Positions 18,781-53,829 of a stretch of DNA of 64,000 nt are shown one piece after another. The translations under genes were made by a program, and so were the position numbers. Below the pieces are notes generated by a model. The model saw nothing but the letters and a program-made list of their open reading frames with translations. It searched no databases and was not told where the DNA came from. Source of the DNA: Mobula birostris (lineage: Eukaryota). The stretch covers positions 3,205,665 through 3,269,664 of the forward strand of contig NC_092384.1 in assembly GCF_030028105.1 (NCBI RefSeq). Reading direction: 5' to 3'. The number at the start of each line of letters is the position of its first letter. The first letter of the stretch is position 1.

Positions 18781-19082
18781 CTGTGCTGTTGTTGTAACGA
18801 AGTAAGTGGCTAGAGCAGAAACCCGGAGGGTGACGTGAGATACCAGACAAGTGCAGACCGTCCCGGTTGGCACAACCTGTGTCACTGACAATCTGCTGGA
18901 AGTTTCATATAGCCCATCCGAAGTGGAGTTGGTAACGGTCGAACCGGTTGTAATTTTGGTGCCGTCTTTATACCAGGTGAAACTGATATCGGTTGGGTAA
19001 AAGGGAGATGTAGTGCACAGAAGAGCCAAGGCTTCCGATTTCTATGGATCTCCGGAGTAAATTTTCAATGGAGCTGGAGGAA
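18781..19082 (-). pseudogene. Gene A C1-set exon with stop and frameshift
   Basis: [49 protein letters not shown]; 302 nt versus 303 nt in gene B. Confidence 0.92.
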
Positions 19083-19508
19083 CTAAGAAATAGTGGAATA
19101 GTTGCATGAATGGTTGTTACTGTTAGCTGTATATTTTCGGCAATATCAGCGTTCGATGCTATTAACATTAAAGCCAAAAAATTAAGATTACAGCGGCAGG
19201 AATTTCAGTGGCAATGGAGGAAAATATTTTTGGATAACTAACGGAGCAAATCGTCGATCATATGGGATCAGTGGCGGCTGTACTTTAAATTTCCGCAAAT
19301 CAAAGAGCTCCAGAATTTAACGTTGAAATGAATGATTATGTACAAATACATTAGCCATATTGTAATTAACGTCGTTGAATACTCATGTTTTATATAGTCA
19401 TCGCGTGCCACTACGATTAATACTGTTATTCTATTTAAGAGGGATTGTAGAAAAGACAAATTCTCAGTCGCAATGTCGCATCAACTGAATCGCTTCTAAT
19501 GCACCTAC

Positions 19509-19829
19509 CCAACACAACTAAAGTCGACCCGGTTCCGTTGCCAATCATTGTGCCCCGATGGGCGATGGTACAATAATAGACTCACGCTTCTTGTGGACGC
19601 ACGTTGACTATCTGCAGGAAGCCGTTGAACTCAGTAGTGAACCCGGTCAATTTTCTAGCGTCATGGTCTGGGTTGATGTAATTATTTTCACCCTTTTTCC
19701 ATCAATATATGTCAACGCGGGGACCCTCCGGCAAAGAGGAAGGGGAACAGTCAAAGAAAAAATTTTCACCCTTGATGGTGTAGGCGATTTTAGGGAGTTG
19801 TGTTACTTTGGCATAATATTCAACTGACC
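19509..19829 (-). pseudogene. Gene A V-set exon with two in-frame stops
   Basis: ..[51 protein letters not shown]; same 321-nt length as gene B. Confidence 0.92.
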
Positions 19830-22194: not shown

Positions 22195-23125
22195 TAACTT
22201 TGGAAACATAGAAACATAGAAAATAGGTGCAGGAGTAGGCTATTCGGCCCTTCGAACCTGCATCGCCATTCAGTATGATCATGGCTGATCATCCAACTCA
22301 GAACCCTGCACCTGCCTTCTCTCCATACCCCCTGACCCTGTATGCCACTAGGCTAAATATCAACTCCCTCTTAAATATAGCCAATGAACCGGCCTCAACT
22401 GTTTCCTGTGGCAGAGAATTCCACAGATTCACCACGCTCTGTGTGAAGAAGTTATTCCTCATCTCGTTCCTAAAAGGCTTCCCCTTTATCCTTAATCTGT
22501 GACCCGTCGTTCTGCACTTCCCCAGCATCGGGAACAATCTTCCTGCATCTAGTCTGTCCAATACCTTTAGGATTTCATACGTTTCAATAAGATTCCCCAC
22601 TCAATCTTCTAAATTCCAACGAATATAAGCCTAGCCGATCCAGTCTTTCCTCATATGAAAGTCCTGGCATCCCAGGAATCAATCTGGTGAACCTTCTTTG
22701 TACTCCCTCTATGGCAAGAATGTCTTTCCTCAAATTAGGGGACCAAAACTGCACACAATACTCCAGGTGTGGTCTCACCAAGACCTTGTTCAACTGCAGT
22801 AGTACCTCCCTGCTCCTGTACTCGAATCCTCTTGCTATAAATGCCAGCATACCATTCGCCTTTTTCACTGCCTGCTGTACCTGCATGCCCACTTTCAATG
22901 ACTGGTGTATAACGACACCCAGGTCTCGTTGCACCTCCCCTTTTTCTAATCGGCCACCATTCAGATAAAAATCTGTTTTCCTGTTTTTACTACCAAACCG
23001 GATAACCTTACATTTATCCACATTAAATTTTCATCTACCATGAATTTGCCCACTCACCCAACCTATCCAAGTCACCCTGCATCCTCCTCACAGCTAACAC
23101 TGCCGCCCAGCTTCGTGTCATCCAT
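22195..23125 (-). mobile_element. CR1 LINE 3' portion with (AAACATAG)n tail
   Basis: ORFs 22584-23021 (LVRPHLEYCVQFWSP) and 22298-22600. Confidence 0.95.
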
Positions 23126-23424
23126 TTTGTGTTGAAAAAAAACTGCAAAGTTTAAAATTATAGTTTGATTCATTCCATTCAACCTTAGATTAATAAATTG
23201 ACCTTCTCAAGGCTTTAAAAGACAGAAAAACAATGTAAAATAAATGATATAATATGATGTCCTTCTTACACTTTATTGTTTCAAAAGGTGGCAATGTGTA
23301 TAATTACGAAAGAAATAATCACTTCCATCGACATTTATGTCATAAATGTCCGATTTTAAATGGATGTTCTTTACAATATGAATAATTGGCCTGTTGTAGC
23401 ATTGTAGATATGGGACGTTGTAAC

Positions 23425-23588
23425 CTGTTCTTTTAGTTTTGGACAGCCGGTGGGGGCTTTCGAGACGTGGGTGTTGAGAAAAGAGACCCAGGAATGCCAG
23501 GGTTATCAAAGAGGATCGGCCAGTCCAAGTCGAACGAGAAGAAAGACGGTGACGTTACCATGGATCCGATCTTTTACAACGCGGGTAC
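23425..23588 (-). pseudogene. Candidate frameshifted TM exon of an activating-type receptor (Arg in TM)
   Basis: cag|GTRVVKDRIHGNVTVFLLVRLGLA [+1 nt] LITLAFLGLFSQHPRLESPHRLSKTKRT G|gttaca; 164 nt, one short of a phase 1-1 exon. Splice sites are weak. Confidence 0.35.
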
Positions 23589-25099
23589 CTGTTTGGTGCC
23601 TATATTACTATGTCGAACACATATAGTTTGAAACTGCGTGACTTGCGCTTTTTACTTTCTTAAGGACGATGGTGAGGGGAAGGAAGGCGCAGCACCGGCC
23701 TATAAGTATGATTGGGAACATCCAGCCTTAACTTCACAATGTTTGCTGAAGGGCAGTTTCCTACAGCTCAGTTTCTGGAGGGCTGACAGTCAAAAACGGT
23801 TTTACAACCATCAGTTCCCAACCTGGCTGAATCAATTTATGTGTTTATCACTTATTATGTTTATCTGATAACCGATGCTCGACTGCGGCAGGATTCTACA
23901 TTGAGTATACAGCAAGGCGCCAGAGAAAACTGATATTTCTCAGACAGTTAATTGCCATAACACAATGCTCAATAACGATATATTCCTATGATTGAGCATT
24001 TATTAGAAGCAAAGGCATTCGCAAGTGTACCACAATTGAGTGACTACCAGAGCTTTCGCCAAAATCCTAGGTTCTTCATCTGGTTCCGTGATGGTGGTGA
24101 AGCGATTTCTCCGTCGATTTGAATAGCTTTACGTATATCCACTGCAATTTTCGTTGGGAAAGTAATTGGGCTGACACATGCAGGGAGGGATCTATCTCCC
24201 GTAGGTTTCACGTTCTTAGATATATCGGCATTTGCCGTTGTGAATCAGAAGATGGAGGGTAGGTATGAAAGCTCCCCAGCAGTTGCCGGAAACCTAGATT
24301 GGTCTTCAAGGGATATAGAGCGAAGCAGCGTTAGTGTTAGGTATACCTCTGAGGGAAAGAATAGAGTGGAGGTGGATTATTGAAACATGCCAGCTGTAAA
24401 GCCATCGTAACCTTGCACGATATTTATCAAGCTTGAGCGCGTGTATACAGAAAACGTATAAGTAGTTTTCGTTCGAACCTACGTTGGAGACCCATAGTCC
24501 AACAATAATACAACAAATGAATTGCTGTTCCCAAGGACTTCATATGGCTGCAGCCACTAGCATACCTGGCCTGGTATGGAATAAATTTGGGGAGTACTCT
24601 CTGTGTGTGTGTAAGAGCAGGAGAGAGAGGGAGAAGTGGGGGTGGGGTTTGGCAGAGAGATAGCGAGAGAAGGTGTTAACGTTTCAAAACGTGCAGGAAG
24701 TATGCTGACGCTGAAACGTTAATAATAAAATGGAAATAAAAATCCCCATGCAAATGCATTCAAGAGACATGGTAATTTCAATTAACATCCATCACTCTCG
24801 TTTTGAGGGCATTCTACCACATCGCATGTATGTCTGTGAGTGGGAGAGAGAACCTGAATTAAATATATCGTGCATAGAGAACAAAATATAATGCCTGACA
24901 AGTCTATTCTTGTAGTTAATGTTCTTATTCCCCACAAATTAAGAACCATATTAAAGGCTTGGTCGGATAGAAAACAGGGAAAATTGCTCCATTCTAAAGT
25001 GTGTGGGGGGGGGGGGCGTGGTGTGGAGGTTGAGGTGGTGTGTGTGTGGATGAGGAGCCAGGGTTTTTGCTACATTTTGGCACTAGCGACTGATATATG

Positions 25100-34384: not shown

Positions 34385-37285
34385 TGTTCTAGAGCATGTT
34401 GATATTAAGGGAGAGGAGGTGTAGGAGTTGTTAAAATACATTAGGACGGATAAGTCCACGGGGCCTGACGGAATATTCCCCAGGCTGCTCCATGAACCGA
34501 GGGAAGATATTGTTGAGCCTATGGCTAGGATCTTTATGTCCTCGTTGTCCAGAGGAATGTTACCGAAGGACTGGAGGGAGGCGAATGTTGTCCCCTTGTT
34601 CAAAAAAAATTAATATTGATAATACGGGTAATGATAGACTAGTAAGTCTTACTTCTGTGGTGGGCAAGCTGTTGGAAAAAAATTCTTACATATAGGATCT
34701 ATGGGCATCTAGAGAATCATGGTGTGATCAGGGACAGTCAGCTTGGCTTTGTGAAGGGCAGATAGTGTCTAACAAGCCTGATAGAGTTCCTTGAGTAGGT
34801 GACCAGGCATATAGATGAGGGTAGTGCAGTGGATGTGATTTAAATGGATTTTAGTAAGGCATTTGACAAGGTTCCACACGGTAGGCTTATTCAGAAAGTC
34901 AGAAGGCATGGGATCCAGGGAAGTTTGGCCAGGTGGATTCAGAATTGGTTTGCCTGCAGAAGGCACAAGGTCGTGGTGGAGGGAGTACATTCAGATTGGA
35001 GGATTGTGATTAGTGATGTCCCACAAAGATGTGTTCTGGGACCTGTACTTTTCATGATTTTTATTAACGACATGGATGTGGGGTTAGAAGGGTGGTTTGG
35101 CAAGTTTGATAATCGTTTCACTCCCCGAATCATCCTCTGAGCACTCTTCAAACTTCCTTAGACTAGGAGCCCAGAACTGTTCACTATACTGAAGGCGAGG
35201 CCTTATCAGTGCCTTATAAAGCCTCAGCATCACATCCCTGCTCTTGTATTCTAGACCTCTTGAAATGAATGTTAACATTGCATTTGCGTTCTCAGCACCG
35301 ACTCAACCTGCAAGTTAATATTTAGGGTGTTCTGCACAAGGACTCTCAAGTCCCTTTACATCTCAGATTTTTGGATTTTCTCCCGGTTTATAAAATAGTC
35401 TGTACATTTATTTCTTCTACCAAAGTGCATGACCATGCAGTTTCCAACACGAATTTCATTTGCCACTTTCTTGCTCATTGTCCTAATCTGCCTGTCCTTC
35501 TGCAGCCTACCTGTTCCCTCAACACTACCTGTCTCTTTTAGTTTCTAACCCGTTTCTAAATATTCTCAGTATGAGTAACCTCCGTTTCCGATCCATCCAA
35601 ACGTCTTACATTTCACCTGTGCTCACGCGTTTGCGATCCGATGATGAATTAACTGTTTACAGTTACAGAACGTAGTAGATGCATATTGAAATAGCATAAA
35701 AAAATGGAATAATAGAACATAGGTGCAGAGAGTAGGCCATTCGGCCCATTGTGCCCGCAACGCTATTCAGTATGATCATGGCTGATCATCCAACTCAGAA
35801 TCCTGCACCTGCCTTCTTTCCATACCTACTGATCCATTTAGCCAAAAGGGCCATATTTACCTCCCTCTTAAATATAGCCAATGAACTGGCCTCAACAGTT
35901 TCCTGTGGCAGACAATTCCACAGATTCACCACTTTCTGTGTGAAGACATTTTTTTCCTGATCTCCGTCCTAAAAGGCTTCCCCTTTATCAACAAACTGCG
36001 ACCCCTCGTTCTGGACTTCCCAAACATCGGGAACAATCTTCCTGCATCTAGCCTGTCTAATCCCTTCGGGATTTGATACGTTTCCATAAGATTCCCCATC
36101 AATCTTCTAAATTCCAACGAGTATAAGACTAGCCGATCCAGTCTTTCATCAAATGAAAGTCCTGCCATCCCAGGAATCATTCTGGTGAACCTTCTTTGTA
36201 CTCCCTCTATGGCAAGAATGTCTCTCCTAACATTAGTGGACCAAAACTGCACATAGTACTCCAGGTGTGGTCTCACCAAGGCCCTGTACAACTGCAGTAG
36301 TACCTTCCTGCTCCTGTACTCGAATCCTCTTGCTATGAATGACAGCATACCATTCGCCTTTTTCACTGCCTGCTGTACCTGCATATCCACTTTCAATGAC
36401 TGGTGTATAATGACACCCAAGGAATTCTTGCACCTCCACTTTTCCTAATCAGCCACCATTCAGATAATAATCTGTTTTCCTGTTTTTGCCACCAAAGTGG
36501 ATAACCACACATTTATCCACATTAAATTGCATCCGCCATGAATTTGCCCACTCACCTAACCTATCCAGGTCACTCTGCATCCTCTTAGCATCCTCCTCAC
36601 AGCTATCACTGCCGCCCAGCTTCGTGTCATCCGCAAACTTGGAGATGCCACATTTAATTCCTTCGTCTAAGTCATTAATATATATTGTAAACAACTGGGG
36701 TCCCAGCACTGAGCCTTGCGGTACCCCACTAGTCACTGCCTGCCATTCTGAAAAGGTCCCGTTTATTCCCACTCTTTGCTTCCTGTACGCCAACCAATTC
36801 TCCATCCACATCAATACCATGCCCCCAATACCGTGTGCTTTAAGTTTGCACACTAATCTCCTGTGTGGGACCTTGTCAAAAGCCTTTTGAAAATCCAAAT
36901 ATACCACCCTCACTGATTCTCCCCTATCCACTCTACTAGTTACATCCCCAAAAAATTCTATGAGACTTGTCAGACATGAGTTTCCTTTCACAAATCCATG
37001 CTGTCTTTGTCCGACAAGTTAAACGCTTTCCAAATGCTCTGCTATAACATTTTTGATAATTGACTCTAGCATTTTCCCCACGACCGATATTAGGCTAAGT
37101 GGGCTATAATTCCCCGGTGTCTCTCTCCCTCCTTTAAAAAAAAAAGCGGGGTTACATTAGCCACACTCCAGTCCTCAGGAACTAGTCCAGAATCTAAAGA
37201 GTTTTGAATAATTATCACTTAACGCATCCACTATTTCCTGGGCTACTTCTTAATCACTCTGGGATGCAGACCATAACCTATCAAC
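34385..37285. mobile_element. CR1 cluster of copy B (RT + 34,385-35,110; - 35,130-35,530; - 35,700-37,285)
   Basis: ORFs 34844-35140, 35926-36420, 36449-36991 ([19 protein letters not shown]); orthologous to 5,070-8,305. Confidence 0.93.
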
Positions 37286-37534
37286 CGGATGGATACCGAA
37301 ATCTACGGGAGGATCGTAACTTTGGCAAAGTACTGCAACCGATTTCATCCGCTGGATATAAGGCCACGAACAGGGTCATTCGTTTGGGAACGTCGGCTTG
37401 AAATAAGGGGTTCATTTTGGTAAATTGAGACATATCTCTGTACCACTTAGGTGTACTGCTTGTTTCTTGTTGTCAAACAAGCGACATTGCAGTTAAAATT
37501 CAATCAGGTAAAACAGATTCCAGGTTCGGCACGT

Positions 37535-37702
37535 TTAGTACTTGGGATTCCGTTCCGAATAAATAACGTCGACACTTTGCATTTTGCTCGGCTGTGAATC
37601 GACTGTGTCGGTCTCCCTTCGATAAACAATTTCTGCTTTCTTGGTCTCTGCCACGGCGATTGGGGCGTAGGTCACGTTCCTATCAGGCGGCCTCTGCGTG
37701 GT
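37535..37702 (-). CDS. Gene B terminal cytoplasmic exon ([55 protein letters not shown])
   Basis: ggatttttcag| 168 nt to TAA; VTYAPI is an ITIM; additional IVY and VIYSE tyrosines. Confidence 0.75.
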   Translation of the reverse strand, partial: TTQRPPDRNVTYAPIAVAETKKAEIVYRRETDTVDSQPSKMQSVDVIYSERNPKY

Positions 37703-40700
37703 CTGAAAAATCCACATTAGTTGGGATAAGTCATTACTTTCATTTTTTAGTCATACTGAGTTTCATGTTAAATATAGTCCCGAGAACTTCGCAAAATCAC
37801 CACTATCTCAAAAGACTACCAACTAACAGTGCTTGATTCATTACCTGTAAGTATAAATAGTTGAACTTTTCCGGCCGCTTATCTCTATTTTCGCTTTACC
37901 CTTTCTGTCACGTAGATGAAATATACTGTGTACTTTAATGAAAAGATCAACGGTTTGCACAGCAGAGGAAATGCAGAATTATGATGATAGTCAAGTCATC
38001 CATCACCTAACTAAATAGCAGAGCAGCTGGATGGACCGAAGTGCCTATACTTGCTCCAAATTCCTACGTTAATACGTACCTGCGCGTAGACCGTCCTCTC
38101 TTGATTGACGGGCCCTGGAACTTTCCGGGATTTGGTAAGATCTAGTGCAGCGTAAGGCACCATCGCCTCGCTTGTAGACTGCATAGATTGAAGCACAGAA
38201 ATATACACATTTTAAAAGTGCAGGCGCCAGAAACGATCAATACGCACACACGTACAATGCCAATTATGTATCTGTATGGCCTTCATCAACGCACCTGCAC
38301 GGACAGTGCAAAAGAAAATAACATACATCGAGTCGACAAAGCTTCTCAGTGTGATCTTTGAAATGCCGCAAATTACCTTCATTCCCATACCTGCTTGATT
38401 TGCACATCACAGTCACAAAACGACAACTTCTCGCCAAGAAATCAAAGTAAGTAATAAGTAAATTCAGCTGCAGTCCATATTAGTGCTTGCAAACACATAC
38501 GGTAATTTCAGTATCTGATTACTAGCTTCACTTGGTCATAAATTAAAAGGCTATTTTCGGCTACAAGTTGTAATTAATTCCGTGCCAAAAAAAAAAAACA
38601 GAACTAGCCTGTCACTTCCTTTTGAGGATACAGTACAGAATAGGGAACTGCTATTCCAGCAGTAGTCTGAAGGTACGACCAGTCCGCCCCAGGCAAGGAC
38701 GGCAGGTATGATCGATATTGATGACATTGCTCTGGAGTTAAAAGCATCCAGTAATGGATCACCTTTTTGGTTGTTAGCAAGCAAGGTTGTTAAAAAGTGA
38801 GTTTAAAATATCAGCTTAGCAAAGTAGGGTATAATCTCCTATGAATGTTAACAGACAAAATATATTAGAAACATCAAACATAAAAAAACCTACAGTACAA
38901 TACAGGCCCTTCGGCCCACAAAGTTCTGCCGAACTTGTCCTTACCTTAGAACTACAGAGGCTTTACTCCGAACACTCTATTTTTCTAAGCTGCATGTAGC
39001 CATCTAGTAGTCTCTTAAAAGACCCCATCGTTTCCGCCTACACCTCCGCCACCGGCTGCCCATGAAAGGGATTGTGAAATAAAGAGCTGGGAAGTTTATT
39101 GGTGAAAGAAATACTGGCCAGGAGAAGGGGTAATCTAACAGGAGAGGACAGAATGCCATGGAATAAAGACAAGGGGGAGGGGCACCAGAGGAATTGCTGT
39201 GCAGGTAAAGAGATAAGGTAAGAGAGGATATAGGTATGGAGATTGGTGAAGGGCAGAGGTATTGACGGAAGTACGAGAAATCTATGATTTTGTCGTCAGT
39301 TTGGAGACTTCCCAGACGGAATATTAGGTGTTGTTCCTCCTATCTGAATGTGTCCTCATTGTGACTAGAGAAAAAGGCATGGACTGACTTTTTTCCCCTT
39401 CTCCAGGTCTGTATCTCTTTCACCAATCAAATTCCAAGCTCTTTACTCCACGCCCAGCACACCCCTCCCCTGGTGTCATCTATCACCTTGCATTTCTTCC
39501 TCCACTCACCTACCTTCTTACTCTAACTGCTTTTTTTCCCCCTCCCTGAATCTTTTTTCCCCAGTATCGATGAAGTGTCTTGGCCCGAAATGTCGACTGT
39601 TTACTCATTTCCATAGATGAAGCCTGGCCTGAAGAGTTCAATCGCACTTTGTATGTGTTGCTCCTAGAACCACATAGTAGTGCAACTCAGAACAGGCCCT
39701 TTGAGCTATCGTGCCACTCTCACTTTCAGCGTTTCATCTCTATCGATTCGATTTACCAGGACTTGTGTCCAGCACTTCTTTGTCTTTGCGATTCACGTGT
39801 TTGTATTCATGATTTTTAGGTAACACGAGTACCTGCCTGTGGTACTTTATCAGACCATAAGACCATAAGACACACGAGCCGAATTAGGCCATTTGCCCCA
39901 TCAAGTAACCTTCGTCATTCAATCATTGCTGATCCTTCTTTTTCCTCCTCAGCCTTTTTCCCGTAACCTTTGATGCTGTGTGCAAACAATAACCCAGCAA
40001 CCTTTGCCTTAGTACACCCAACAACTTGGCCTCCACAGCTGTCTGCGGTAACACATTCTACAAATTCATCATCGTCCGGCCTAAGGCATTTGTCGGCATC
40101 TCTGGAGTTTTAAGTGGACGCCCCACTATTTTCTTGTCCAAAACTTCCCCACCATGGGAAACATCCTTTCCAACATCTACGCTGTCTAGGCCTTTCAATA
40201 TTCAAAATGTTTCAATGAGATCCCCCTTCATCCTTCTAAATTCCAGCGAGTACAGACCCAGAGACACCAATGTTCCTCGTATGATAATCCTTTCACTACC
40301 CGAATCATCCGTGTGAACCTCCTCTGAGCCCTCTCCGATGCTTCCTTAGACTAGGTGCCCAGAACTGTTCATTATACTGAAGGTGAGGCCTTATCAGTGC
40401 TTTATACAGCCTCAGCATCGCATCCCTGCACTTGCATTCTAGACCTCCTGAAATGATTGTTAACATGGCATTTGCCTCCTCAGCACCGACTCAACCTGCA
40501 AGTTAATATGTAGAGTGTTCTGCACAGGGACTGCCAAGTCCCTTTATATCTCAGATTTCTGGATCCCCCCCCCCCCCCGTTTATAAATAGTCTGTACATT
40601 TATTTCTTCTACCAAAGTGCATGACCATGGAATTTCCAACACTGAATTTCATTTGCCACTTTCTTAACCATTCTCCTAATCTGTCTGTCATTCTGCAGCC

Positions 40701-42163
40701 TATCTGTTTCCACATTAGTTGGGATAAATCATGACTTTCATTTTTTAGTCATATTGAGTTTCATGTTAAATATAGTCCTGAGAACTTCGCAAAATCACCA
40801 CCGTCTCAAAAGACTACCAACTAACAGTGTTTCTTTCATTACCTGCAAGTATAAATAGTTGAACTTTTCTGGCCGCTTATCTCTATTTTCGCTCTACCTT
40901 TTCTGTCACGCAGATGAAATATACTGTATACCTTAATAAAAAGTTCAACGGTTTTCACAGCGGAGGAAATGCACAATTAGGGTGATAGTCAAGTCAACCA
41001 CAACCTTACTAAATAGCAGAGCAGCTGGATGGACCGAAATGCTTATACTTGCTCCAAATTCCCACGTTAATACGTACCTCCGCGTAGACCGTCCTCTGAT
41101 GATTCACGGATCCTGGAACTTTCCGGGATTTGGTAAGATCTAGTGCAGCGTAAGGCACCATTGCCTCGCTTGTAGACTGCATAGACTGAAACACAGAAAT
41201 ATACACATTTTAAAAGTGCAGGCGCCAGAAACTATCAATACGCGCAAACATACAATGCCAATTATGAATCTGTACGGCTTTCATCAACGCATCTGCACGC
41301 AGAGTACAAAAGAAAATAACATACATCGCGTCGACAATGCTCCTCTGTATGATATTTGATATGCCGTGAATTACATTAATTTCCATACTTGCTTTACAGT
41401 CACAAAACGACAACTTCTCGCCAAGAATTAAAAGTAAATAATAAGTAAATTCAGTTAAAGACCATATTAGTGCTTGCAACCACATACGGTAATTTCAGTT
41501 TCTGATCACTAGCTTCACTTAGTCATAAATGCAAAGCCTGTTTCCGGCTACATGTTGCAGTTAAGTCCGTGCAAGAAACCGAACTAGCCTGTCACTTTCC
41601 TTTGAGGATACAGTACAGAATAGTGAACTGCTATTCCAATAGTAGTCTGTAGGTACGACCAGTCCGCCCCTGGCAAGGACGGCAGGTGTGATCGATATTC
41701 ATGACATTTTTCTGGAGTTAAAAGCATCCAGTAATGGATCACCTTTTTGGTTGTTAGCAAGCAAGGTTGTTAAAAAGTGAGTTTAAAATATCAGCTCAGC
41801 AAAGTAGGATATAATCTCCTATTAATATTAACAGACAAAATATATTAGAGACATAACACCTAAAAAAAACTACAGTACAATACAGGCCTTCGGCCCACAA
41901 AGCTGTGCCGAAATGTCCCTACCTTAAAACTACTTAGGTAGTTTTAAGGTAGGGACTACCCAAAACTACCCATAGCCCTCTATTTTAAGGTAGGGACTAC
42001 CCAAAGTTTTAAGGTAGGGACTACCCAAAACTACCCATAGCCCTCTATTTTTCTATGTTTCATGTAGCCGTCCTGTAGTCTCTTAAAAGACCCATTCGTT
42101 TCTGCCTCCAACACCGCAACAGGCAGCCCATGAAGGGGAATACCCACGATAATGAACGTGTAG

Positions 42164-42228
<65 letters not shown>

Positions 42229-45200
42229 GCATTATTTTATATATTTTCTTAGTATTCAATCGGTTTTGGATACATACCATGCATTGATCGGATCTTTCTT
42301 CCTCCTTTTGCGTGCCTGGAAGTTAAATAAGATAAACAAAAAAAAGCATTTTGTCATCAAAGACAGAGGTTTCACATCGAGTTACTGGATATTACTAAAC
42401 ATTGCAATGGAATTGCCTCCTTTCCAGTGTTATTATAAATATTAGAATGACTGTTCTGATGTCGACGGATTTTAATGTTGGTCTTTGCCTTTGGGGCTTA
42501 CAATGCCGGCATGGAAAGAGAATTCGTCTGCAAAGTTTGTGAGAGCGCCAGTGTCTCCCGGAATGCCGGAGTTCAGCATTAATGAATTCCGAGTCACCAA
42601 AAATGCGCTGTGCATACTAAATGAATGAGAGAATCCCTTATATTTTAAATTGGAGGATATTTTCTTACGTTGAGTTACTGCTTCCAGTTCTTTTAGACGA
42701 ACAATTGTTTTTGACCACTTCAAACTAAATTCATCAGAATTTGGTGATCATTAACACAAAACCTTAGTTAATGATAGAAGGAGAACATGTTGAGATCTCA
42801 AAGCCAATCATCTCCTCACTAAGGAGAAAATAAATCAAACAGAGAAATAACGTTGCAAGTGGAGATGGTGGGGTGCATCCACCCTACCTCACAAGTGGAG
42901 ATGGTGGGGTGGATGCAAAGTTGACCACTTCTTAGGTAAAAACGGAAATAATGAAATACGCTTACGTATATTTTTCTGGATTTTCAAAAAAAGTTGAAAT
43001 GCTGCCTACATAGTAAATCAGCTTGTGACAGCTTAGAGCCTTCAGCAGAATCATCAACCCAATTTTGGGAAAGAATGCCGTAGGAAACGTATCTGCACAG
43101 AGTGAGGAGTGACGGTGAGTCAACTGAGACCAACATAACTACTCATATGCCGAGTGACGGTCAGTACAACTGGGACCAACATAACTACTCATAGTGCCGA
43201 GTGACGGTCTGTACAACTGGGACCAACATAACTACTCATATTGCCGAGGAACGGTCAGTACAACTGGGACCAATGATGTAAGTAGTTAGACTCGGAATCA
43301 ATCAGAGAGCTCCAAATTTTTATGTGACACAAATTTGAGAGAGATCCTCAGTATTGAGAACATTACAGGGGGTTATCAGAATCTTGGTAAACTGATTTAA
43401 CATGCTCGATAGTGGATTTCAACAGAAGGGACAAGGAGATCCTTCATTACTTGGAACGTTCGAATCCCATGATAGAACGTATAGGGGTCTAGGTGAATAA
43501 ACGCACGACAATCTTACACTACGTCTTTGGTGGGCAAGACCGTAAAACGCAGACAATCAAAACTCAGGTTTGGAGAGCCAAGGCTGAAAAAGAGGTACAT
43601 TATGCGAAACTTGACAGCATCTCACTCAGAGTGACCAGCAGAGCGGCCTGTCTAGAAACATCGGGCACAAACACGTTTTTTTTTGTTTTTGAAATGAATT
43701 GCAGTAATCGCACTAGAAATGTAAGGACATCGATTACATATCGAGTCTCCTTTCTCATAACAAGGACGAGGGATGGCATAATAAATGTGTTAATCTTTTA
43801 CGAAATTATTAGGTAATTCGATACAGGAAGATTGAACATAAGACCATAAGACTATAAGATAAAGGAGCAGAGGTAGGCTATTCGGCTAATCGAGTCTGCT
43901 CTGCATTGAATTACGGGCTGATCCAATTCTTTCAGTCATCCTCTTTCCCCTCCCTTCTCCCCGTACCCTTTGCTGCACTGGCTAATCAAGAACCTATCTA
44001 TCTCTGCTTTAATGCACAAAAAGAATTGGCCCCAACAGCAGCTCGTGGCAGCAAATTCCACAGATTTATCATCCTCTGACTAAAGTAATTTCTCCACATC
44101 TCTGTTGTTAGTGGCGGTTCTTCAATCCTGAAGTCGTGCCTTCTTGTCCTGGACTTCTCTGCCATGGGAAATAACTTTGTTATATCTAAGCTGTTTAGGC
44201 CTTTTAACATTCGGAATGTTCTAAGAGGTCCCCGCCGACTCCCCCCCCCCCCCCACCCTTTCTCCTGAACGCCTTGCAATACAGCCTAAGAGCTGCCAGA
44301 CATTCCTCATACTGTAACCCTTTCATTCCTGGAATCATTCTCGTAAATCTTCTCTGAACCCTCTGCAATGTCAGTGTATCTTATCTAACATAAGGAGACC
44401 AAATCTGCACACAGTACTCTGTGTGGTTTCACGAGCGCCTTACAGCCTCAACAAAAGATCCCTGCTCTTACGTTCTATGCCTCCAGAAATGAATGCCAAC
44501 ATTGCATTCGCCTTCTTACCACCGACTCAACCTAGAGGTTAACCTTCAGGGTATCCTGCACATGGAATCCCAAGTCCCTTTCCATCTCTGCATTTTGAAT
44601 TCTCTCCCCATCTAAATAATAGTCTGGCCGTTTATTTATTCCAACAAACAGCATGACCATACACTTTCCAACATTGTATTTCATTTGCCACTTCTTTGCC
44701 CATTCCCCTAAGCTTTCTAACTCTCTCTGCAGGCTCTTTGTTTCCTCAACACTACCCGCTCCTCCACCTATCTTTGTATTATGGGCAAATTTAGCTACAC
44801 ATCCATTAATCACCCAGTCCAAATCATTGACATACATCATTTAAAGCAACGGTCCCAACACCGACCCCTGTGGAATTTCACTGGTAACCGCCAGCCAGCC
44901 AGATCCCTTTATTCCCACTCTGCTTTCTGCCGCCAGCCAATGCTCCACACATGTGATCTTATCCTGCTAAGCAGCCTCATGTGCGAAACTTGTCAAAGGC
45001 CTTCTGAAAATCCAAGTACGCCACATCTATTTTATCTCATTTCTCTACCCTGCTTGTAATTTCCTCAAACAATTGCAGTAGGTTAGGCAGTCAGAATTTT
45101 CCTTTAAGAAAACCAAGCAGGCTTTGGCCTATCTTGTCATGTGCCTCCAGGTACTCCGGAACATCATCCCTGACAATCGACTGCCAACAAATTCCCAATC

Positions 45201-48200
45201 ACTAATGTCAGTCTAACAAGTTTCCTTCCTGCTGTTTCCCACCCTTCTGAAACAGCAGGTAAACATTTGCAATTTTCCAGGCAATTCTTGAAAGATCATT
45301 GTTAATGCCTAAGCAATCTCTCCACCTACTTCCCTCAGAACCGGAGGGTGCATTCCATCAGGTTCAGGAGATTTATCAACCCTCAGATCATTAAGATTCC
45401 TGAGCACCTTCTCAGCTGTAATTTTCACTGCACAAGCTTCACTACCCTGACAATCCTAAATGTCCAATATACTGCAGATGTCTTCCACTGTGAAGACTAA
45501 TGTAAAATACGCATTCAGTTCCTCTGCCATCTCTGTGTCTCTCATTACAATATCTCCAGCGTCATTTTCTATTGGTCCTATATCTACACTCAACTCTCTT
45601 TTACCCTTTATATACTTAAAAAAAAGCTTTTAGCATCTTCTTTAATATTAGTCGCCAGCTTTTTTTCATAATTCATCTTTTCCTTCCTGTTGACGTTCTA
45701 AGTTTCCTTCAGCAAGATTTTAAAATCTCCCAATTCTCTGTTTTGCCGTTAGCTTTGACTTCCTTGTATGCTCTCTCTTTTGTTTTTGCTTTGGTTCTGA
45801 CTTCATTTGTCAGCCACGGTAGTTTCTTTCTTCCATTCCAAAATGTCTTCTTATTTGGAATATATCTGTTTCGCATTTTCCACATTTTACACAGAAACTC
45901 CGGCAATTTATGCTCTGCGAACCTTTCTGATAGTGTCCCATTTCAGTCATCTTCGGCCAGTTCCCCTCTCTTGCCACTGCAACTTCCTTTATTCCACTGA
46001 AATACCGACGCATTGGAATTTAGTTTCTCCTCAGATTTCAAGGTGAACTCGAGCATATTGTGATCACTGTTCCCTAAGGGTTCTTTAACCTTTAGTTCCC
46101 TTATCATCTCCATATCATTGCACAGCACCCAATCCAGCACAGCCAATCCCCTAGTGGGCTCAACACAAGCTGTCCTAAAAAGCTGTTCCTTCGACATTCT
46201 GCAATTTTTCTCTCTTGAGGTCCAGTACAGACCTAGCTTTCCCAATCCACTTTCATCTTAAAATCCAAAACTACTATCATGACTTTGCCTTTCCATCACG
46301 CCTTTTCCATGTCCTGCTGTAATTTGTAATCCACATCTCGGCTGCCGATTGGAGACCTGTATACAAGTGTCATTAGGGTCCTTTTACCCTTGTCATTTTT
46401 TAACTCAACGCATAGAGTCTCTACACCTTCTGACCCTATGTCATCCCTTTCTAATGATTTAATATTATTCCTTAATCACAGCGTTCACTCTGCCTACTAA
46501 CCTATCTTTCCTATCTAACCGTATATCCTTGGATGTTCAGCTCCTAATGGCAGCCATCGTTTAGCCAAGTTTCAGAGATGGCCACAACGTCATACTTGCC
46601 AATCTGTATCTGAATTTTAAGACCGTCCATTTTATTTCCTCCGCTGCGTGCATACGAATATAACATTTTCAGTCCAGTACTTGTTGCTTGCTGTTTTAAC
46701 TGCACTATGCATCTCCTGTCCTGTAACTCATCCCACTGGGTGTGATTATGCCTCATCTCCTGCCTGTCCTTTCTATCCTCTCTGTTGAACGCTATCTTTG
46801 ATTTATTTCTATTTTCCCCTTCCTCAGCCCTATCACTCCAGTTCTCATCCTCCTGCCAAATTCGTGTAAATTCTCATGAACACCTCTATTAAATCTCCGT
46901 GTTAGGATATAGGATTCTTTTGGGTTCAGGTGTAATCGGTCCTTTTTTTTTGTACAGTTCGTACCTCCCCCAGTAGGGTCCCCAATGGTCCAGAGTTCCA
47001 AAGCCCTGCCCCCTACACCAGTCTCTCAGCCTCGCATTAATATGCCTGATCATGCTATTCTTGTGCTCGTTAGCACGTGGCACAGGCAGCAATCCTGAGA
47101 TTACCACCCTGGGGGTCCTGCTTTTCAGCTTCCTACCCAACTCCCTGTAATCTTTCTTCAGGACCATCACCCTTTTTCCACCTATGTCATTGGTAACAAT
47201 GTGTACCAAGACTTCTGACTGTTCACCCTTTCCCCTTCAGAATACTCTGCACCCGATCCAAGACATCTCGTACCCTGGGACCTGGGAGGTAACACACCAT
47301 GCATGTAACTCTATCAGGCTGAGTTAACCATCTGTCTGTTCTCCTTACTATGGAATCCTCTAGGACTACCCGATTCCTCCTCTTCTTCTTTCCTGGGCGG
47401 GAGGAGAAGATAGCGGCGCGACGCAGCTCGCAGCAGCCACTCCGGCGCTGATAGCTGTTATCTGTCAAGTAGGGTGCCGTGCACAATCCTGATTTGATGG
47501 AGACAGACGACAGCACGGAGGAACATCTGGTGAAACTTCTGAAATACCTGTTTCGCTGCTGCTGCTACTGTGTGATCCAGAATCTCCAGAGGGGAAGGCC
47601 CTGAGTCCTCGGCTTTGCTTGTTGCTCGGCGTCCGGGGCGGTATTGCAGCGCTCAGCAGAGAATGGTGCTCGTTGCTCGGTGTCGGATGGTTGGTCGGAG
47701 GCTCGAAGTTTTCGGACGGACTCAGAGTACACTTCAGACGGGTGCTTCCAATGCATCGGCAAGTTTCCGGCGCTTGGAGGATCATGGCAGGGAGAGTTTC
47801 TCCCGTCTACCGTCTGCGTGAGATGATGGGGCTATCGGGACCTGAAATTTTTTTTTTCTACCGTGCCCACGGTCTGTTCTCTATCAAATTACGGTATTAC
47901 TTTGCACTGTTGTAACTATATGTTATAATTATGTGGTTTTGCCAGTTTTAGTCTTGGCTTCTCCTGTGTTTCTGTGATATCTTTCTGGAGGAATATTGTA
48001 TCATTTTAACGCATGCATTTCCAAATGACAATAAAGGAAGACTGAGTCTCCTCATAATCTAATCTCATCTAATCTAATCTAATCTAATCCCTTCTGCACC
48101 ACGGAATCACTGTCAGTACTCTAAGACCCGATCACTGTGGTCGTCCTCTGTCAGACCACCCCCTGAACAGCATCCAAAGCGAGATAACGATTACTGAGGG

Positions 48201-51200
48201 GTATGGCCAGAGGGTGCTGTCTAGTCTCGGAGCTCTTCCCATCCCTTCACAGACAGTCACCCTCTTATCTAACTCCTTCAGCCTCCGGGTGACTACCTCC
48301 TTGTAGCCCTTATCTATCTTCTGCTCTCGTTCCCTAATAAGTTGTAGGTCATCAAGCCGCAGCTCCAGATCGCCAACACGGTCTCTCAGGAGCTGCATCT
48401 CGGTGCACGTGTCGCAGATGTGGCCATCTGGGAGACTGGGAGTTTCCCAGGATTCCCACATCTGACACCCAGAGCAAAGTACTGACCCTAGAGACATGGT
48501 CTCTGTTCCTCCAAAAAAAAAAAAAAAAAAAAAAAATGCAAGGGATAAAAAAACGACGTCCGCTTACCTCACTGAAGCCCGAATGATCCAAAGCCCTACC
48601 ACTCTGCCTCAGACCACTGCTTTGATGACCGCTCCGCTAAGCAGTGTCTCCCTTTTATGCCTGAACGTCCCTGCTCCCCAAATCAGGATTGGTTCTCCGG
48701 TTGTAGCCGAGTTCCCGCGAGGCTTTCCCCTTTCAAACTTCGCTCCCGGACCTGTGCGCCGCCTCCTCCCCCGGAGATCTGCAACTCACGATTGGTGCGC
48801 CGGTTATAGAACAATACAGCACTATACTGGCTCTTCGGACATTCCCTTTGTGCCTACACTGTGCACTATTCCAACATATTCTCCCACATAACTTTCTGTC
48901 ATTTCTTCATACATGTGCCTATTTCAAAGTCTCTCTCTTAAATACCTTTATTAATTTGCCTCTACAACCAACCCTGGCAGCGCGTTCTACGCATTCCCAT
49001 TCTCTTTTTTATAAGAATTATTAACTTCCTGACATCTCATCTATGCTTTCTTCCAGTGGCCTTAAAAAAATATACCCCCTTATATTAGCCAGTTCTGCCC
49101 AGGAAAATAAGTCTCCGGCTGTCCACTCTATATAAGCCTCTTATCATTTTGGTAATCTTTATCACATACTCACCCATGCTACTTTGCTCCAAAGAGAAAC
49201 TTCCTAGCTCGCTTAACGTGTCCTCATCAGCTATGCTCTGTAATCCAGGCAACATTTTGGTAAATCTCCCTGGCACATTATCTAATGCTATCCCATGTTT
49301 TCAGTAATGAAGGGACCAGAAGTAAACTGAAAATTGGCAGTGTGGTCTAATCAGAGTTTTATCGTGCTGCAGTATTAGCTCGCGGCTATTGAATTCAGTC
49401 CCCCAATTAATGAAAGTTATTACTTTTTTACCCACTCAATCGCCAGACACTGCAAATTTGAGAGATCCATGAACATTGACCCAAGATACCTCTGTTCGAT
49501 GGAGGATAAGGGGTGACTTGATCGAGGTGTATAAGGTGATGAGGGGCATTAATCGCGTGGATAGTCAGAAGCTATTAATAGAGCTTAAAATCTGACACGA
49601 TGGGGCATATTTTTAATGTGCTTGCAAATAGGTATCGAGGTGCTGTAAGGGATAAGTTTTTCACACAGACCGTCGTAGGTGCGTGGAATGCACTGCTGGC
49701 GGCTTGTGGAGGCGGATACAATAGGGCTTTTTAACAGCCTGTTACATACAAACATGGAGTTTAGAAAAAAAACAGAGGACTATGAGCTAGGGAAATTCGA
49801 GGCAATCACTACGGTAGGTTACATGGTCGGCACAATATTGTAGGCCGAAGGGTCTGTAATGTGCTGTAAATATCTATGTTCTCTGTTCTAAGTCTACTCT
49901 GTTATTGCTCCCTTGTAATCTGCCTTCAAGTTCAGCCGTCGACAGTGAACTACTTCACACTTTTCCGTGTTGTAATTCATTTGTCACTTCAGAGCCCTGC
50001 TCTGCATCCTATCAATGTCCCTTTGAAACATCCGGCAAACTTCTACACGATCCACACCACCACCAATCTCCGTGTGATCTGTAATTTACTAATGAACTCT
50101 CCCACTTCCTCATTCAAGTCATTCATAAAACTCGCAAAGAGGAGGGACTCCAGAACAAATTCCAGTGGAACACGGCTGGTTGCCGTCCTGCAGGCAGAAC
50201 ACACCCTGCCTGCTACTGCTCCCTGCCTTCTATCCCCAAATCAATTCTGAACCATCTTTCCCTCTATCCCATGCCTCTTGATTTTCGGAATGAGCCTAGC
50301 ATGGGAAAGCTTGCCAAATGCCTGACTAAAATCCATATACACCACACCCACTAGCTAGAAATCCCATCCAGTCAGGCAGTGCAGCTGAACATTCAACAGG
50401 AGCTCCGAAGACCTTTTCCCTTCGGGAAGAAAGATCTTCGCCCCAAAGTCGTATGAAGTTATGTGGTGAACACAAAAACACGAGGGCGACCAAACTTCTA
50501 TCAGCCCAGGATAGAGGGAGTAGGTACAAATAGAAGCATAACGTACCGAGTATTTCAAAATCCTTGGCCCCCATTACGCTTTGTGCATACAATTTGGCTG
50601 GGATATTAGTACTTCCCAAAAAAATGCAGCGAAAGTTTGTGGGCCGGATGAATGTGATAAGTTTTGTTGAATGAGAGTGGCAATGCGAGAAGCCGAACAT
50701 GAACGGATTATTGGACATGGGCGAGCTGCTGTCGACGGTCAATGCCCGGTAGGTGTGGAGGGATTAAGACGATGAGGAAGAAGAAAACCCCAAAGGAAGT
50801 TGAAAAAGAACTGTGCCAAAATCGTATTGAGCGTATGGATTCACGACGATTTACGCTAGAGGAGCATAGATCATGGCCCGCGCTGGCGTGCCGAGATGTA
50901 CAATGTAATCAGTTGTAACCTACTGGAATGCTTAAGGAATAGATAAAACTTCTCTCTCACTCTTTCTTTACCCGCCTTCCCCTGCACGTTCAGATAATTC
51001 AGATTCTTACCTTTATTTTTCCTTGCAATGCATCGCTTCGCAATGAGAAAGACCAGCAATATAGACACCAAACCACTCAATACACATATGGAGGTCATGA
51101 CAGCATTGATAGTAGTAGCTCCTGGAAAATTGAAATATATTAGATACAAATGAAAACTGTAGGCCGTTCAAGCTAATAAATCCCCTTGTCTTTGAATCTG

Positions 51201-53829
51201 ACATCACATCTGAAATTTTCCACTGTTTTAATTTCCTGTAAAGTAAAAACGTAGTAGACAGAGATTGGATTTTGTAAAATCAATCCGAAAAAAAAAATAT
51301 ATATATATATAAATCGGTCTCTCTAACTGACTAATGATATTTAAAAAAAACGTTTGTCTAAACATACATTGCTTTCAGGTGTCACTTTATGAAACTGCTA
51401 CTTTCAGCGAGCTATAAGGCTTTTCATCCTCTCGGAAAGTTTGTATTTAAATACGCATAGTTTTGTGCCTTGTTGAATGGAACTTTTAATATGGTTGCAC
51501 TCTTCCGGTATACAGGGAATGAAGAGTTGTGTTTCGGCTTGGGATGGACACTGGCCTGTGTATGCTTTCAACGCCTATGCTGATTCACTTGACAATCAAA
51601 GCGGAACGGTAAAGCGGCACTTGTTAGCAGATTACTGGTAACAGCATTTCTCTGGAAGTGAGCTACTCTTCTGCATTGTGACGGGGAACCAGAAACAATG
51701 GTGGCATTGTTGCAACGAAGTTCATTTAATTAAAAACAGAACAGGAGGAAGGGAGACTGGCGTTAAACTGGACAAGTTATTTGAGTCACGGTAGTTGCAA
51801 TTTGATCCACGCAATTTTTTAGATGAAAAGATATAAAGAAGTACATATAAAGTACATATAAAGTATCTGGAGAACATCTTTTCATTACTATCAGAAAGAT
51901 TGTGGATATTTTGGCTTCATAGAGGGAGAGGATACAAATAGAAGGATAACGTACCCAGTATTTCAAAATCACTGGTTGCCATTAAGCTCTGTGCACGCAA
52001 TTTCGTCGGGTTATCAGTACTTCCAACGCCACACCCCCACAAAAATGCAGAGAAATAATTTGGGGGCGGATGGATGGGCTGTTTTGTTGGTGTACGACAA
52101 GGTTGAACATGCCGGATTATTGGAGGGAATTTACTTGGCAAATAAAGACGATCTGCTTCCTGTGGACAATAAACAGCACCAGATTTGCTCCTTTTCGCGT
52201 CTTGTGGCGCCTTTAGCATCTGTCTGTTCTCAACCTAACACGGATGGAAAGCACAGGGTTCCGGCTGGATTCCAGCCTGGGATCATCGCCTCGAGGTCCG
52301 GAGCTGATGGCACCACATCACCGGCCGGCAACACCAGTGTGTCTTAGATTTAACATATTATACAAATCGGAGAATTCGTGAGGATAATTCTCTCAAAACA
52401 CAAGCTCATTGCATTTTATGCCAGAGAAGGCAGCTTCCATATAAATTGTAAAAAGCTTATTTTGTATGTATTTAATAAGAACCTATTAGCGATCACAGGG
52501 AAGTCCAGCGAAAACGATTAAATGCGGATATCGTTTAAAACTGGTTTATAGATACCCGACTTTTTATGATAGTTGAAATCCATAGTCTCACCTGTGCTGT
52601 TGTTGATAACGATGTAAGTGGCTAGTGCAGAAACCCGGAGGCTGACGTGAGATACCAGACAAGTGTAGGCTGTCCCGGTTGGCACAACCTGTGTCACTGA
52701 CAATCTGCTGGATGCTTCATATAGCCCATCCGAAGTGGAGGTGGTAACAGGTGAACCGGTTGTAATTTTGCTGCCATCTTTATACCAGGTGAGACTGATA
52801 TGCATTGGGTAATAGGGAGATGTAGTGCACAGTAGAGCCAAGGCTTCCGATTTCTCTGGATCTCCGGAGTAAATTTTCAATGGAGCTGGAGGAACTAAGA
52901 AATAGTGGAATAGATAGATGAATGGTTGTTTACGGTTAGCTGTATATTCTCGGCAATATCAGCCTTCGATGTTATTAACATAAAAGGCAAAAAAAAAAGT
53001 AACAACGCCGGGATTTTAAATTGCAATGGAGGAAAATAGTTTTTGATAACTAACGGAGCAAATCGCCGATCATGTGAGATCAGTGGCGGCTGTACTTTAA
53101 TTTTCCGCAACTCAAAGAGCTCCAGAATTTTACGTTGAAATGAATGATTATGTACAAATACATTAGCCAGATTTTAATTAATGTCGTTGAATACTCTTGT
53201 TTTATATAGTCTGCGCGTGCCGCTACTATTAATACTGTTATTCTATTTAAGAGGCATTGTACAAAAGACAATTTCTCAGTCGCAATCGCATCAACGGAAT
53301 CGATTCTAATTCACCTACCCAACACAACTAAAGTTGAACCGGTTCCGTTGCCAATCATTGTGCCCTGATGGGCGATTGTACAATAATAGACTCCCGCATC
53401 TTGTGGAAGCACGTTGACTATCTTCAGGAAGCCGCTGAATTTAGTGCTGAAGCCGGTCAATTCTCTGGTGTCATAGTCTGGTTTGATATAACTATTTTCA
53501 CCCTTTTTCCACCAATATATGTCAACGCGGGGACCCTCCGGCAAGGAGGAAAGGGAACAGTCAAAGGAAATATTTTCACCCTTCAAGATGTTGGCGGTTT
53601 TAGGGAGTTGTGTTACGTTGACAGATGGTTCAACGAACCCTAAATTAAAGAAAGGCAATTCCGAATCAGTAAGAGACATTATAAAGAGTGTATACAATTG
53701 TAAAGACGAACAAGAACAAACATAAAGAGATATTTAATAACTGTTTCATTCTGAAGAATGGGAAAAACATTTACCCGCAAAATATATCATCCAAAGAAGC
53801 AGACAGTGAGGTCCCTCGCTGGCTAACAT
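37535..53829 (-). CDS. Intact SIRP-like non-rearranging VJ-C1 inhibitory Ig-superfamily receptor (gene B), spliced model ~361 aa (397 aa with stalk exon)
   Basis: Exons 53829-53775, 53639-53319, 52894-52592, (52342-52235), 51121-51011, 38355-38327, 38178-38080, 37702-37535. All have AG/GT boundaries, phases 1-1-1-1-1-0-0 chain correctly, 1086 nt without stalk = 361 aa + stop, no internal stops. Joining TM to the distant cytoplasmic exons is inference. Confidence 0.75.
38080..38178 (-). CDS. Gene B cytoplasmic ITIM exon ([33 protein letters not shown])
   Basis: ctatgcag| 99 nt, phase 0-0 |gtacgt; VPYAAL fits ITIM consensus (I/V/L/S)xYxx(L/V/I). Confidence 0.8.
38327..38355 (-). CDS. Gene B candidate cytoplasmic micro-exon ([10 protein letters not shown]), phase 1-0
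   Basis: atttcaaag| 29 nt |gtatgt; donor conserved in all three homologues (gtaagt at 9344, gtatgt at 41324); supplies the phase change needed between TM and ITIM exon. The acceptor position is uncertain. Confidence 0.5.
39065..39665 (+). mobile_element. Interspersed repeat ending in a gatgaag..ggcccgaaa..gtcgac motif (Penelope-like terminal-repeat candidate)
   Basis: Motif at 39,567-39,597; a reverse-complement end fragment of a related repeat occurs near 5,020-5,065. Confidence 0.45.
39850..40709 (-). mobile_element. CR1 3' fragment with (GACCATAA)n tail
   Basis: Tail at 39,852-39,872; LYKALIRP region; its other end abuts the start of the internal duplicate at 40,710. Confidence 0.85.
40710..42138. 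repeat. Internal duplicate of 37,712-39,070 (micro-exon + ITIM exon block, lacking the terminal exon)
   Basis: Starts ccacattagttgggataa at both 37712 and 40710 and stays colinear to the CR1 tail (..gcccatgaa). Confidence 0.9.
41078..41176 (-). CDS. Second, duplicated ITIM exon within gene B ([33 protein letters not shown])
   Basis: Intact cag| and |gtacgt sites, open frame, Tyr motifs intact; lies in the internal duplication 40,710-42,138. Confidence 0.6.
42164..42226. repeat. (CA)n microsatellite
   Basis: Direct. Confidence 0.95.
43117..43272. repeat. 47-bp minisatellite, ~3.3 units
   Basis: Same unit as 11,324-11,432, one more copy. Confidence 0.9.
43843..48800 (-). mobile_element. Near-full-length degenerate CR1 LINE (5' UTR, ORF1 Zn-finger/zipper + esterase, EN, RT, tail)
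   Basis: ORF 48132-48497 ([23 protein letters not shown]), 46889-47209 ([12 protein letters not shown]), EN 45943-46756, RT 44532-44840, tail gaccataagactataag. Confidence 0.93.
47394..48089 (+). mobile_element. Non-autonomous retroelement with (ATCTA)n tail nested in CR1 ORF1
   Basis: GC-rich 5' end ggaggagaagatagcggcgcgacgcagctcgc.., caataaa, then ataatctaatctcatctaatctaatc; splits ORF1 between 47,390 and 48,090. Confidence 0.65.
51011..51121 (-). CDS. Gene B transmembrane exon ([36 protein letters not shown])
   Basis: ttttccag| 111 nt |gtaaga; ~21 uncharged hydrophobic residues followed by basic stop-transfer KRxxxRKNK. Confidence 0.88.
52235..52342 (-). CDS. Gene B candidate stalk or secretory-tail exon ([36 protein letters not shown])
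   Basis: ctaag| 108 nt open in phase 1-1 |gttgag (weak donor); open in the same frame in copy A (18423-18530); read-through gives G-stop in both copies. Confidence 0.45.
52592..52894 (-). CDS. Gene B exon 3: Ig C1-set domain
   Basis: tttcttag| [53 protein letters not shown] |gtgaga; 303 nt, phase 1-1; C1 motifs (F/Y)xPxxIxxxW and YxCxVxH. Confidence 0.92.
53319..53639 (-). CDS. Gene B exon 2: Ig V-set domain with germline J-like G strand
   Basis: ttag| [48 protein letters not shown] |gtaggt. Canonical C-W-C, DxGxYYC and GxGxxLxV; SLPEGP before the Trp resembles SIRP V (SLxPVGP). Confidence 0.93.
53775..53829 (-). CDS. Gene B exon 1: signal peptide [18 protein letters not shown](G)
   Basis: ATG at 53829, hydrophobic core CLLLWMIYF, phase-1 donor G|gtaaat; homologous leader in copy A. 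Confidence 0.85.

Follow-up and report, generated by a model that had tools for sequence, protein, structure and literature searches.

A receptor gene on the minus strand of Mobula birostris, at positions 53829 to 37535 of the 64,000-nucleotide stretch analyzed here (the window), is real and transcribed, as shown by canonical splice sites and by exon joints in RNA contigs. We consider it probable that the gene is intact and transcribed and belongs to a multigene family of type I membrane receptors with a non-rearranging VJ-C1 ectodomain; members were found here in cartilaginous fish alone, and the tail of this one carries immunoreceptor tyrosine-based inhibitory motifs (ITIMs). The corrected coding sequence comprises eight exons and 1,194 nt and encodes 397 amino acids; the 397-codon frame is open, and 14 of 14 splice sites are intact. 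An earlier note on this DNA had placed the leader, V, C1, transmembrane (TM), last, and one of the ITIM exons where we find them, with AG/GT sites and with RNA joints from leader to V, V to C1, C1 to TM, and ITIM exon to last exon. Missing from its model were a 38-nt exon (42315-42278) and a second ITIM exon (41176-41078). The same note had regarded the gene as hidden and novel, a view that does not survive comparison with public predictions: an orthologue or closest relative from Mobula hypostoma is fully annotated with the corrected architecture, and the family is widely predicted. The gene is thus an ordinary new member of a publicly predicted, unstudied chondrichthyan family and not a new kind of molecule, and the locus itself adds little beyond its corrected gene model.

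Transcript structure

Two sets of public RNA runs contain the gene, one from a related species (runs including X1 and X2) and one identical to the window (runs including X5). A 939-nt contig from the related species, which matches the window at about 95.6% identity, links the leader through V, C1, TM, and exon 5 to an ITIM exon. Exon 1 (53775 to 53829; all exons lie on the minus strand) holds the ATG and a split leader in 55 nt and ends in phase 1 at a GTAAAT donor, with its RNA joint at 53774/53638 in runs X1 and X2. Exon 2 (53319 to 53639; 321 nt) encodes a V-set domain whose J-like G strand (NGTGSTLVV) is already joined in the germline, and RNA joints are present on both of its sides. Exon 3 (52592 to 52894; 303 nt) encodes a C1-set domain and is bounded by RNA joints 52894/53319 and 51120/52591. 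The latter joint (52591/51120 in the direction of transcription) splices C1 directly to TM in the RNA contig, which removes the stalk exon proposed earlier. Exon 4 (51011 to 51121) encodes a short connecting peptide, an uncharged TM helix that is the best hydrophobic window, and a basic stop-transfer sequence (KRCIARKNK); RNA covers this exon and exits at its donor. Leader, V, C1, and TM exons have phases 1-1-1-1, and the ITIM exon at 38178-38080 and the last exon are in phase 0, all with AG/GT sites. Introns measure, from 5' to 3', 135, 424, 1,470, 8,695, 1,101, 2,899, and 377 bp. No further C1 exon was found within the gene by tblastn, nor any other Ig exon of this kind in the window besides a tandem paralogue, copy B, described below.

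The path of the transcript beyond the TM exon required the largest correction. Past the TM donor, the next 30 letters of the contigs from X1 and X2 match 42314-42285 with one mismatch and match positions 10516-10487 of copy B exactly. This defines exon 5 (42278 to 42315), which has 38 nt, AG/GTATGT sites, and a phase change from 1 to 0 and encodes a 13-residue peptide shared with three predicted family proteins: P0162 (the M. hypostoma model), P0015, and P0001. In the earlier transcript model, the TM exon was instead joined over a distance of 12.6 kb with a 29-nt exon at 38355, for a product of 361 amino acids with one ITIM exon. Its frame closes, and AG and GTATGT sites are present at the micro-exon (38327 to 38355, minus strand). 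However, RNA depth is zero over bin 38288-38471 in four runs, the only contigs that exit the TM donor enter at 42315, and the acceptor is poor, with a weak pyrimidine tract. The annotated congener P0162 likewise lacks the micro-exon; it and other family members carry GTxKEEExSD in place of the 10-residue peptide of that model. We therefore rejected the micro-exon, and the junction 51011>38355, for which RNA had been proposed as the check, is almost certainly wrong. Of the 12.6-kb intron filled with long interspersed nuclear elements (LINEs) described earlier, the size has to be reduced to 8,695 bp (intron 4; 42316 to 51010, minus strand), and the degraded LINE pieces remain, as same-strand reverse-transcriptase and endonuclease-like open reading frame (ORF) fragments.

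The ITIMs are spread over the last three exons. Exon 6 (41078 to 41176), the upstream ITIM exon, has 99 nt, encodes VPYAAL ... TVYAE, and runs from phase 0 to phase 0 with intact AG/GTACGT sites and an open frame. Exon 7 (38080 to 38178), the downstream ITIM exon, also has 99 nt from phase 0 to phase 0 and encodes VPYAAL ... TVYAQ. Contigs from X1 and X2 cover it, and among the window-identical contigs (100%), record 24 of X5 spans the joint 37702|38080 and extends 55 letters past 38178. Depth in bin 41048-41231 is 1.40, which equals 4.68 x 55/184 and places the 55 extra letters on exon 41176-41078. From this arithmetic, together with the two such exons in P0162, exon 6 is very probably included in the transcript. 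The related species also fits two ITIM exons: two contigs fall on the exon near 38 kb with different mismatch counts, and one of them begins with GCAG, letters on which an ITIM exon ends and exon 5 does not. The coding part of the last exon (exon 8; 37535 to 37702) contributes the VTYAPI ITIM, three further Tyr residues, and the stop; records 17 and 19 of X3 and record 24 of X5 match it with 0 to 1 differences. The 3' untranslated region extends to at least about 37179.

Domain architecture and the chondrichthyan family

Both ectodomain assignments exceed their Pfam thresholds, with 32.8 bits for V-set in the V exon (cut-off 26) and 48.1 bits for C1-set in the C1 exon (gathering cut-off 21). 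C1-set criteria, listed for domains d2 and d3 of SIRP-alpha, are 13 residues between Cys and Trp, (F/Y)(F/Y/H)P at the BC loop, and xVxH after the F-strand Cys (PMC2785349). All are present here: 13 residues separate the B-strand Cys from the C-strand Trp, the BC loop reads YYP, and C-L-V-S-H runs from the F-strand Cys. The V domain and an 11-residue J-like strand are contiguous in one exon, followed directly by a GT donor, and no recombination signal sequence (RSS) was found in 53250-53700 (neither CACAGTG, CACTGTG, nor a nonamer). The germline-joined J-like strand reported earlier is thereby borne out. Within this strand (about 53340-53350), alignment to lambda J places the Asn of an NGT sequon at the Phe/Trp position of the immunoglobulin (Ig) and T-cell receptor (TCR) FGxG motif. 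This Asn, in N-G-T-G-S-x-L-x-V, is nearly invariant in the family (N97 in the family alignment). It is possible that a glycan on it might block V-V pairing of the light/heavy-chain type.

The TM segment has no charged residue. In P0162, which is 88% identical, AlphaFold2 models a helix at residues 228 to 262 and an ectodomain of two beta-sandwiches with a predicted local distance difference test (pLDDT) score of 86.6. The uncharged TM and ITIM-bearing tail of a VJ-C1 type I receptor, as first described, are therefore retained in the corrected model, with a tail that is richer than the five Tyr and two ITIMs counted before. It contains eight Tyr and three ITIM-consensus sites ([ILVS]xYxx[ILV]), VPYAAL twice and VTYAPI once (Y285, Y318, and Y354). 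Every ITIM-consensus Tyr has a second Tyr 15 to 22 residues downstream, and the unit encoded by an ITIM exon is VPYAAL with TVYAx 22 residues on. These motifs predict a familiar mode of action. The V domain would bind a ligand, and Src-family kinases could phosphorylate the ITIM tyrosines Y285, Y318, and Y354. The tandem SH2 domains of SHP-1 or SHP-2 would then dock on Tyr pairs 15 to 22 residues apart, and this docking would be expected to damp activation of the leukocyte carrying the receptor, as with SIRP-alpha and other ITIM receptors.

The closest relative, P0162, is an NCBI model from Mobula hypostoma of 397 amino acids, named "tapasin-related protein-like." It aligns to the window's gene over residues 1 to 396 without a gap at 87.9% identity, with exon 5 and both ITIM exons present, and its V and C1 domains are each 91% identical. 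All nine V-exon differences listed for the related-species contig reproduce P0162 residues; the contig is thus the transcript of P0162 or a near-identical one, and the P0162 model is itself RNA-supported. P0162 and other predicted chondrichthyan VJ-C1-ITIM proteins have the same exon and domain order as the window's gene and share its signature motifs; the window's copy is a separate locus or a species version. No protein identical to the window's gene was among the relatives returned.

A total of 204 library proteins match the C1 exon at E<=1e-10. More than 45 full-length-type relatives were obtained, all of them chondrichthyan (skates, rays, sharks, and a chimaera). Matches with a single C1 domain and a length of 200 to 490 amino acids came from Amblyraja, Leucoraja, Hemitrygon, Mobula, Heterodontus, Heptranchias, Scyliorhinus, Mustelus, Chiloscyllium, Hemiscyllium, Carcharodon, and Callorhinchus. 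No strong match outside Chondrichthyes was returned by the word-filtered searches, a result that is not proof of absence. The cartilaginous-fish host suspected from the sequence is in agreement with this distribution, the nearest relative being from Mobula. Automatic names are mixed (SIRP-alpha-like, SIRP-beta-1-like, Ig lambda-1-like, tapasin-related-like, NCR3LG1-like, and CD276 homolog), and labels such as SIRP-like, lambda-like, and tapasin-like mask one coherent family. Its ectodomain signatures, all found in the window's gene, are YWWKxGE and GNGTGSxLxV in the V exon together with VPPTPLKI and YTCLVSHxSL. Family tails are built from the units xxYAxL(D/N)L ... ERTVYAQ, followed in many members by LTYAAL ... 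TEYAQL; the ERTVYAQ signature is shared by the window's gene.

The number of C1 domains is one or two depending on the member, as is that of ITIM exons, and in some cases the TM segment and tail are charged or truncated. Among these last are P0003 (Hemitrygon akajei) and P0011 (Leucoraja erinacea), in which either a short tail follows a TM with a Lys or the tail is truncated; this suggests paired inhibitory and activating (or decoy) forms. Automatic annotation also truncates the family: P0015, a 209-amino-acid "uncharacterized protein" of M. birostris, is a partial paralogue model that starts in mid-C1, without leader and V. The genes for P0015 and P0162 span 15.3 and 19.5 kb, respectively. 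Our literature search found neither an experimental study of any member nor a paper describing the family. The origin of Ig and TCR is a question to which non-rearranging V(J)-C1 genes are relevant (PMC2785349, PMC12227049), and the family contributes many such genes with an inhibitory tail in cartilaginous fish.

Duplication, decay, and evolutionary rate

Both ITIM exons arose from an internal tandem duplication with arms of about 1.4 kb and a period of about 3 kb. The downstream arm (37711 to 39071) and its partner (40709-42139) are identical at 1208 of 1341 aligned positions (local alignment, about 90%), and only 9 bp separate the breakpoint from the last exon downstream of it. Since the congener protein P0162 also has two ITIM exons, the duplication probably preceded the species split. 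It would add one more docking unit to the tail, and the locus illustrates how duplicating an exon can extend an ITIM tail.

Copy B (8568 to 20019, minus strand) is a tandem paralogue with the exon order of the live gene, its own exon 5 at 10517-10480, and a single ITIM exon. It is a pseudogene. Its V exon is interrupted by two in-frame stops and its C1 exon by one, the TM donor reads GG and not GT, and the last-exon acceptor reads TG and not AG; the ITIM Tyr is replaced by Asn. With a live gene beside a dead tandem copy, the locus is a tidy case of birth-and-death evolution, and the family as a whole probably consists of paired inhibitory and activating receptors with fast turnover by duplication and decay. 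In both copies, exon 5 is followed after about 45 bp by a long (TG)n microsatellite (42156-42233 and about 10350-10440). Between the copies, a quick six-frame translation of 23400-23620, a proposed site of a relic activating-type TM exon, gave no convincing hydrophobic stretch.

LINE reverse-transcriptase ORF fragments (FADDTKLGG-type motif) on the gene's strand occur immediately downstream of it (36449-36991 and 35926-36420), in the interval that separates it from copy B (22298-23021), and within intron 4 (44532-44840). The LINE identity of the intron ORFs (e.g., 44532-44840) is assigned by resemblance to the clearer reverse-transcriptase ORF at 36449-36991; Pfam searches of the intron 4 ORFs gave weak or absent matches and no significant reverse transcriptase. 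RNA depth over repeats at 37000-37367, 38840-40863, and 41784-42151 ranges from hundreds to tens of thousands.

Several observations weigh against an intact, functioning receptor or against details of the model. No RNA contig from M. birostris itself falls on the TM exon or exon 5. In this species, the inclusion of exon 6 and the joint 42278>41176 are read from depth and from the congener model. Neither AATAAA nor ATTAAA was found as a polyadenylation signal down to 36800. What is said of the ligand, of the cells that express the gene, of phosphorylation, and of SHP recruitment is predicted from motifs. Finally, the 30 coding differences listed between the gene and the Mobula hypostoma transcript comprise 25 nonsynonymous and 5 synonymous changes, with 9:0 in the V exon. 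The 25:5 ratio fits diversifying selection on a ligand-binding receptor and fits relaxed constraint equally well, and the neighboring copy is already dead.

On another reading, the gene is still transcribed but its function is decaying, so that this copy would be on its way to becoming a young unitary pseudogene within a birth-and-death cluster. Copy B has the congener's letter at 14 of 19 sites, which indicates that most of the changes behind the 25:5 ratio are derived on the window's live copy. Decay would also fit a pseudogene as tandem neighbor and own-species RNA that is low in depth and fragmentary in its contigs. However, neither the 397-codon frame nor any of the 14 splice sites is damaged, the structural Ig residues and the three ITIMs have all been retained, and spliced transcripts are present. 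A high ratio of nonsynonymous to synonymous changes is, moreover, usual in V domains of immune receptors under diversifying selection, and the 9:0 in V is not significant alone (binomial P of about 0.075). We consider decay improbable and retain the reading of an intact, transcribed receptor gene.

Relation to SIRP, antigen receptors, and UrIg

Among reviewed proteins, SIRP-alpha (PTPNS1; PDB 2WNG; PMC2785349) is narrowly the closest. In each, a V-set domain that includes a germline J-like strand precedes the C1-set part of the ectodomain, the TM is uncharged, and the ITIM tail has paired Tyr; both families include paired activating relatives. With the SIRP family, the gene shares an N-terminal V-set domain with the J-like strand in the same exon and, at the motif level, an uncharged TM with ITIM Tyr pairs. 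It differs in the membrane-proximal part, where SIRPs have two C1-set domains (V-C1-C1) and the window's gene has one (V-C1), a single C1 exon being joined by RNA to TM. Ectodomain identity to SIRP-alpha is only 21 to 29%, and the J-strand Asn-glycosylation sequon is specific to the ray/shark family.

These similarities raise the possibility that the gene is truly orthologous to SIRP-alpha and encodes a compact form, with a single C1 domain, of the "don't eat me" receptor that binds CD47. Foldseek against reviewed proteins (Swiss-Prot) ranks SIRP-alpha first, both with the whole P0162 chain (E of 4.8e-17) and with the ectodomain alone (rat SIRP-alpha; E of 4.2e-14, 29% identity). The margins are small, however, with Skint, PD-L1, TCR-beta, Ig-lambda, and butyrophilins following within about 2 orders of E-value in the ectodomain search. 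A profile of the family gives SIRP-alpha d3 alone 48.5 bits, including its VPPT hinge, and the HV(S/T)LQ motif is shared with d2. Over single stretches of the same profile, human lambda V-C (68.7 bits) and mouse kappa V-C (66.6 bits) nevertheless outscore SIRP-alpha d1-d2 (61.6 bits). In comparisons with solved structures in the PDB, the leading matches include Fab light chains (VIA-align Z of 13.5 to 14.4) and, level with them, PD-L1 (14.4).

The tail unit xxYAxL ... xxYAx resembles the paired tyrosines of SIRP-alpha, but an ITIM with a second Tyr at a spacing of about 20 residues is common to many inhibitory receptors. Most relatives are named SIRP-alpha-like by NCBI, but automatic names carry no weight when the same family is also called Ig-lambda-like, tapasin-related-like, and NCR3LG1-like. 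With the defining V-C1-C1 ectodomain absent, orthology to SIRP-alpha is unlikely. The SIRP-alpha-like label of the earlier note stands to the extent that SIRP-alpha is the closest reviewed protein (Foldseek rank 1) and fails as an assignment to the SIRP family, given the lack of V-C1-C1 and light chains that score as well. As a chondrichthyan VJ-C1-ITIM receptor, the gene most resembles SIRP-alpha and, judged from its sequence, would work like it; this is resemblance, short of demonstrated SIRP family membership.

Because multi-domain chains sum scores, whole-chain PDB profile rankings were set aside as a family test, and only per-stretch scores were used. The non-chondrichthyan C1 sequences obtained, which provide no curated anchors for a tree, were automatically named lungfish and frog C1 arrays, light-chain-like arrays of teleosts, and an MHC II beta, with 40 to 55 bits per domain, like any C1. 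One bird protein named "titin-like" (P0199) was considered as a relative and rejected as I-set of the titin type.

Ig light chains and TCR share with the window's gene the V(J)-C1 architecture, the split leader, and phase-1 exons. In contrast to them, the gene has no RSS or separate J segment, carries its own TM and signaling tail, and has Asn in place of the Phe/Trp of FGxG. PRARP of chicken is a further non-rearranging VJ-type gene of the Ig superfamily, discussed as a relic of the antigen-receptor precursor in work cited in PMC10751288. The shark genes UrIg and UrIg2 (PMC12227049; PDB 9DMX) are similar in having a non-rearranging VJ exon, a split leader, and C1-type domains, and they too occur in elasmobranchs. 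UrIg2 is the top PDB match for the C1 exon by summed score, with only 28 to 51 bits per domain. UrIg2 carries at least nine C domains and lacks an ITIM tail (PMC12227049), whereas the window's gene has one C1 domain and an ITIM tail and presumably serves another role.

A more ambitious and still doubtful proposal is that the family, far from being a SIRP offshoot, represents an independent and undescribed lineage, seen here only in Chondrichthyes, of paired non-rearranging VJ-C1 receptors under strong diversifying selection (9:0 in the V exon), with a V-C unit that is sister to Ig light chains and TCR and signaling expanded by ITIM-exon duplication. If true, it would provide, beside UrIg/UrIg2 and SIRP, a further living candidate for the pre-RAG antigen-receptor ancestor and its signaling.

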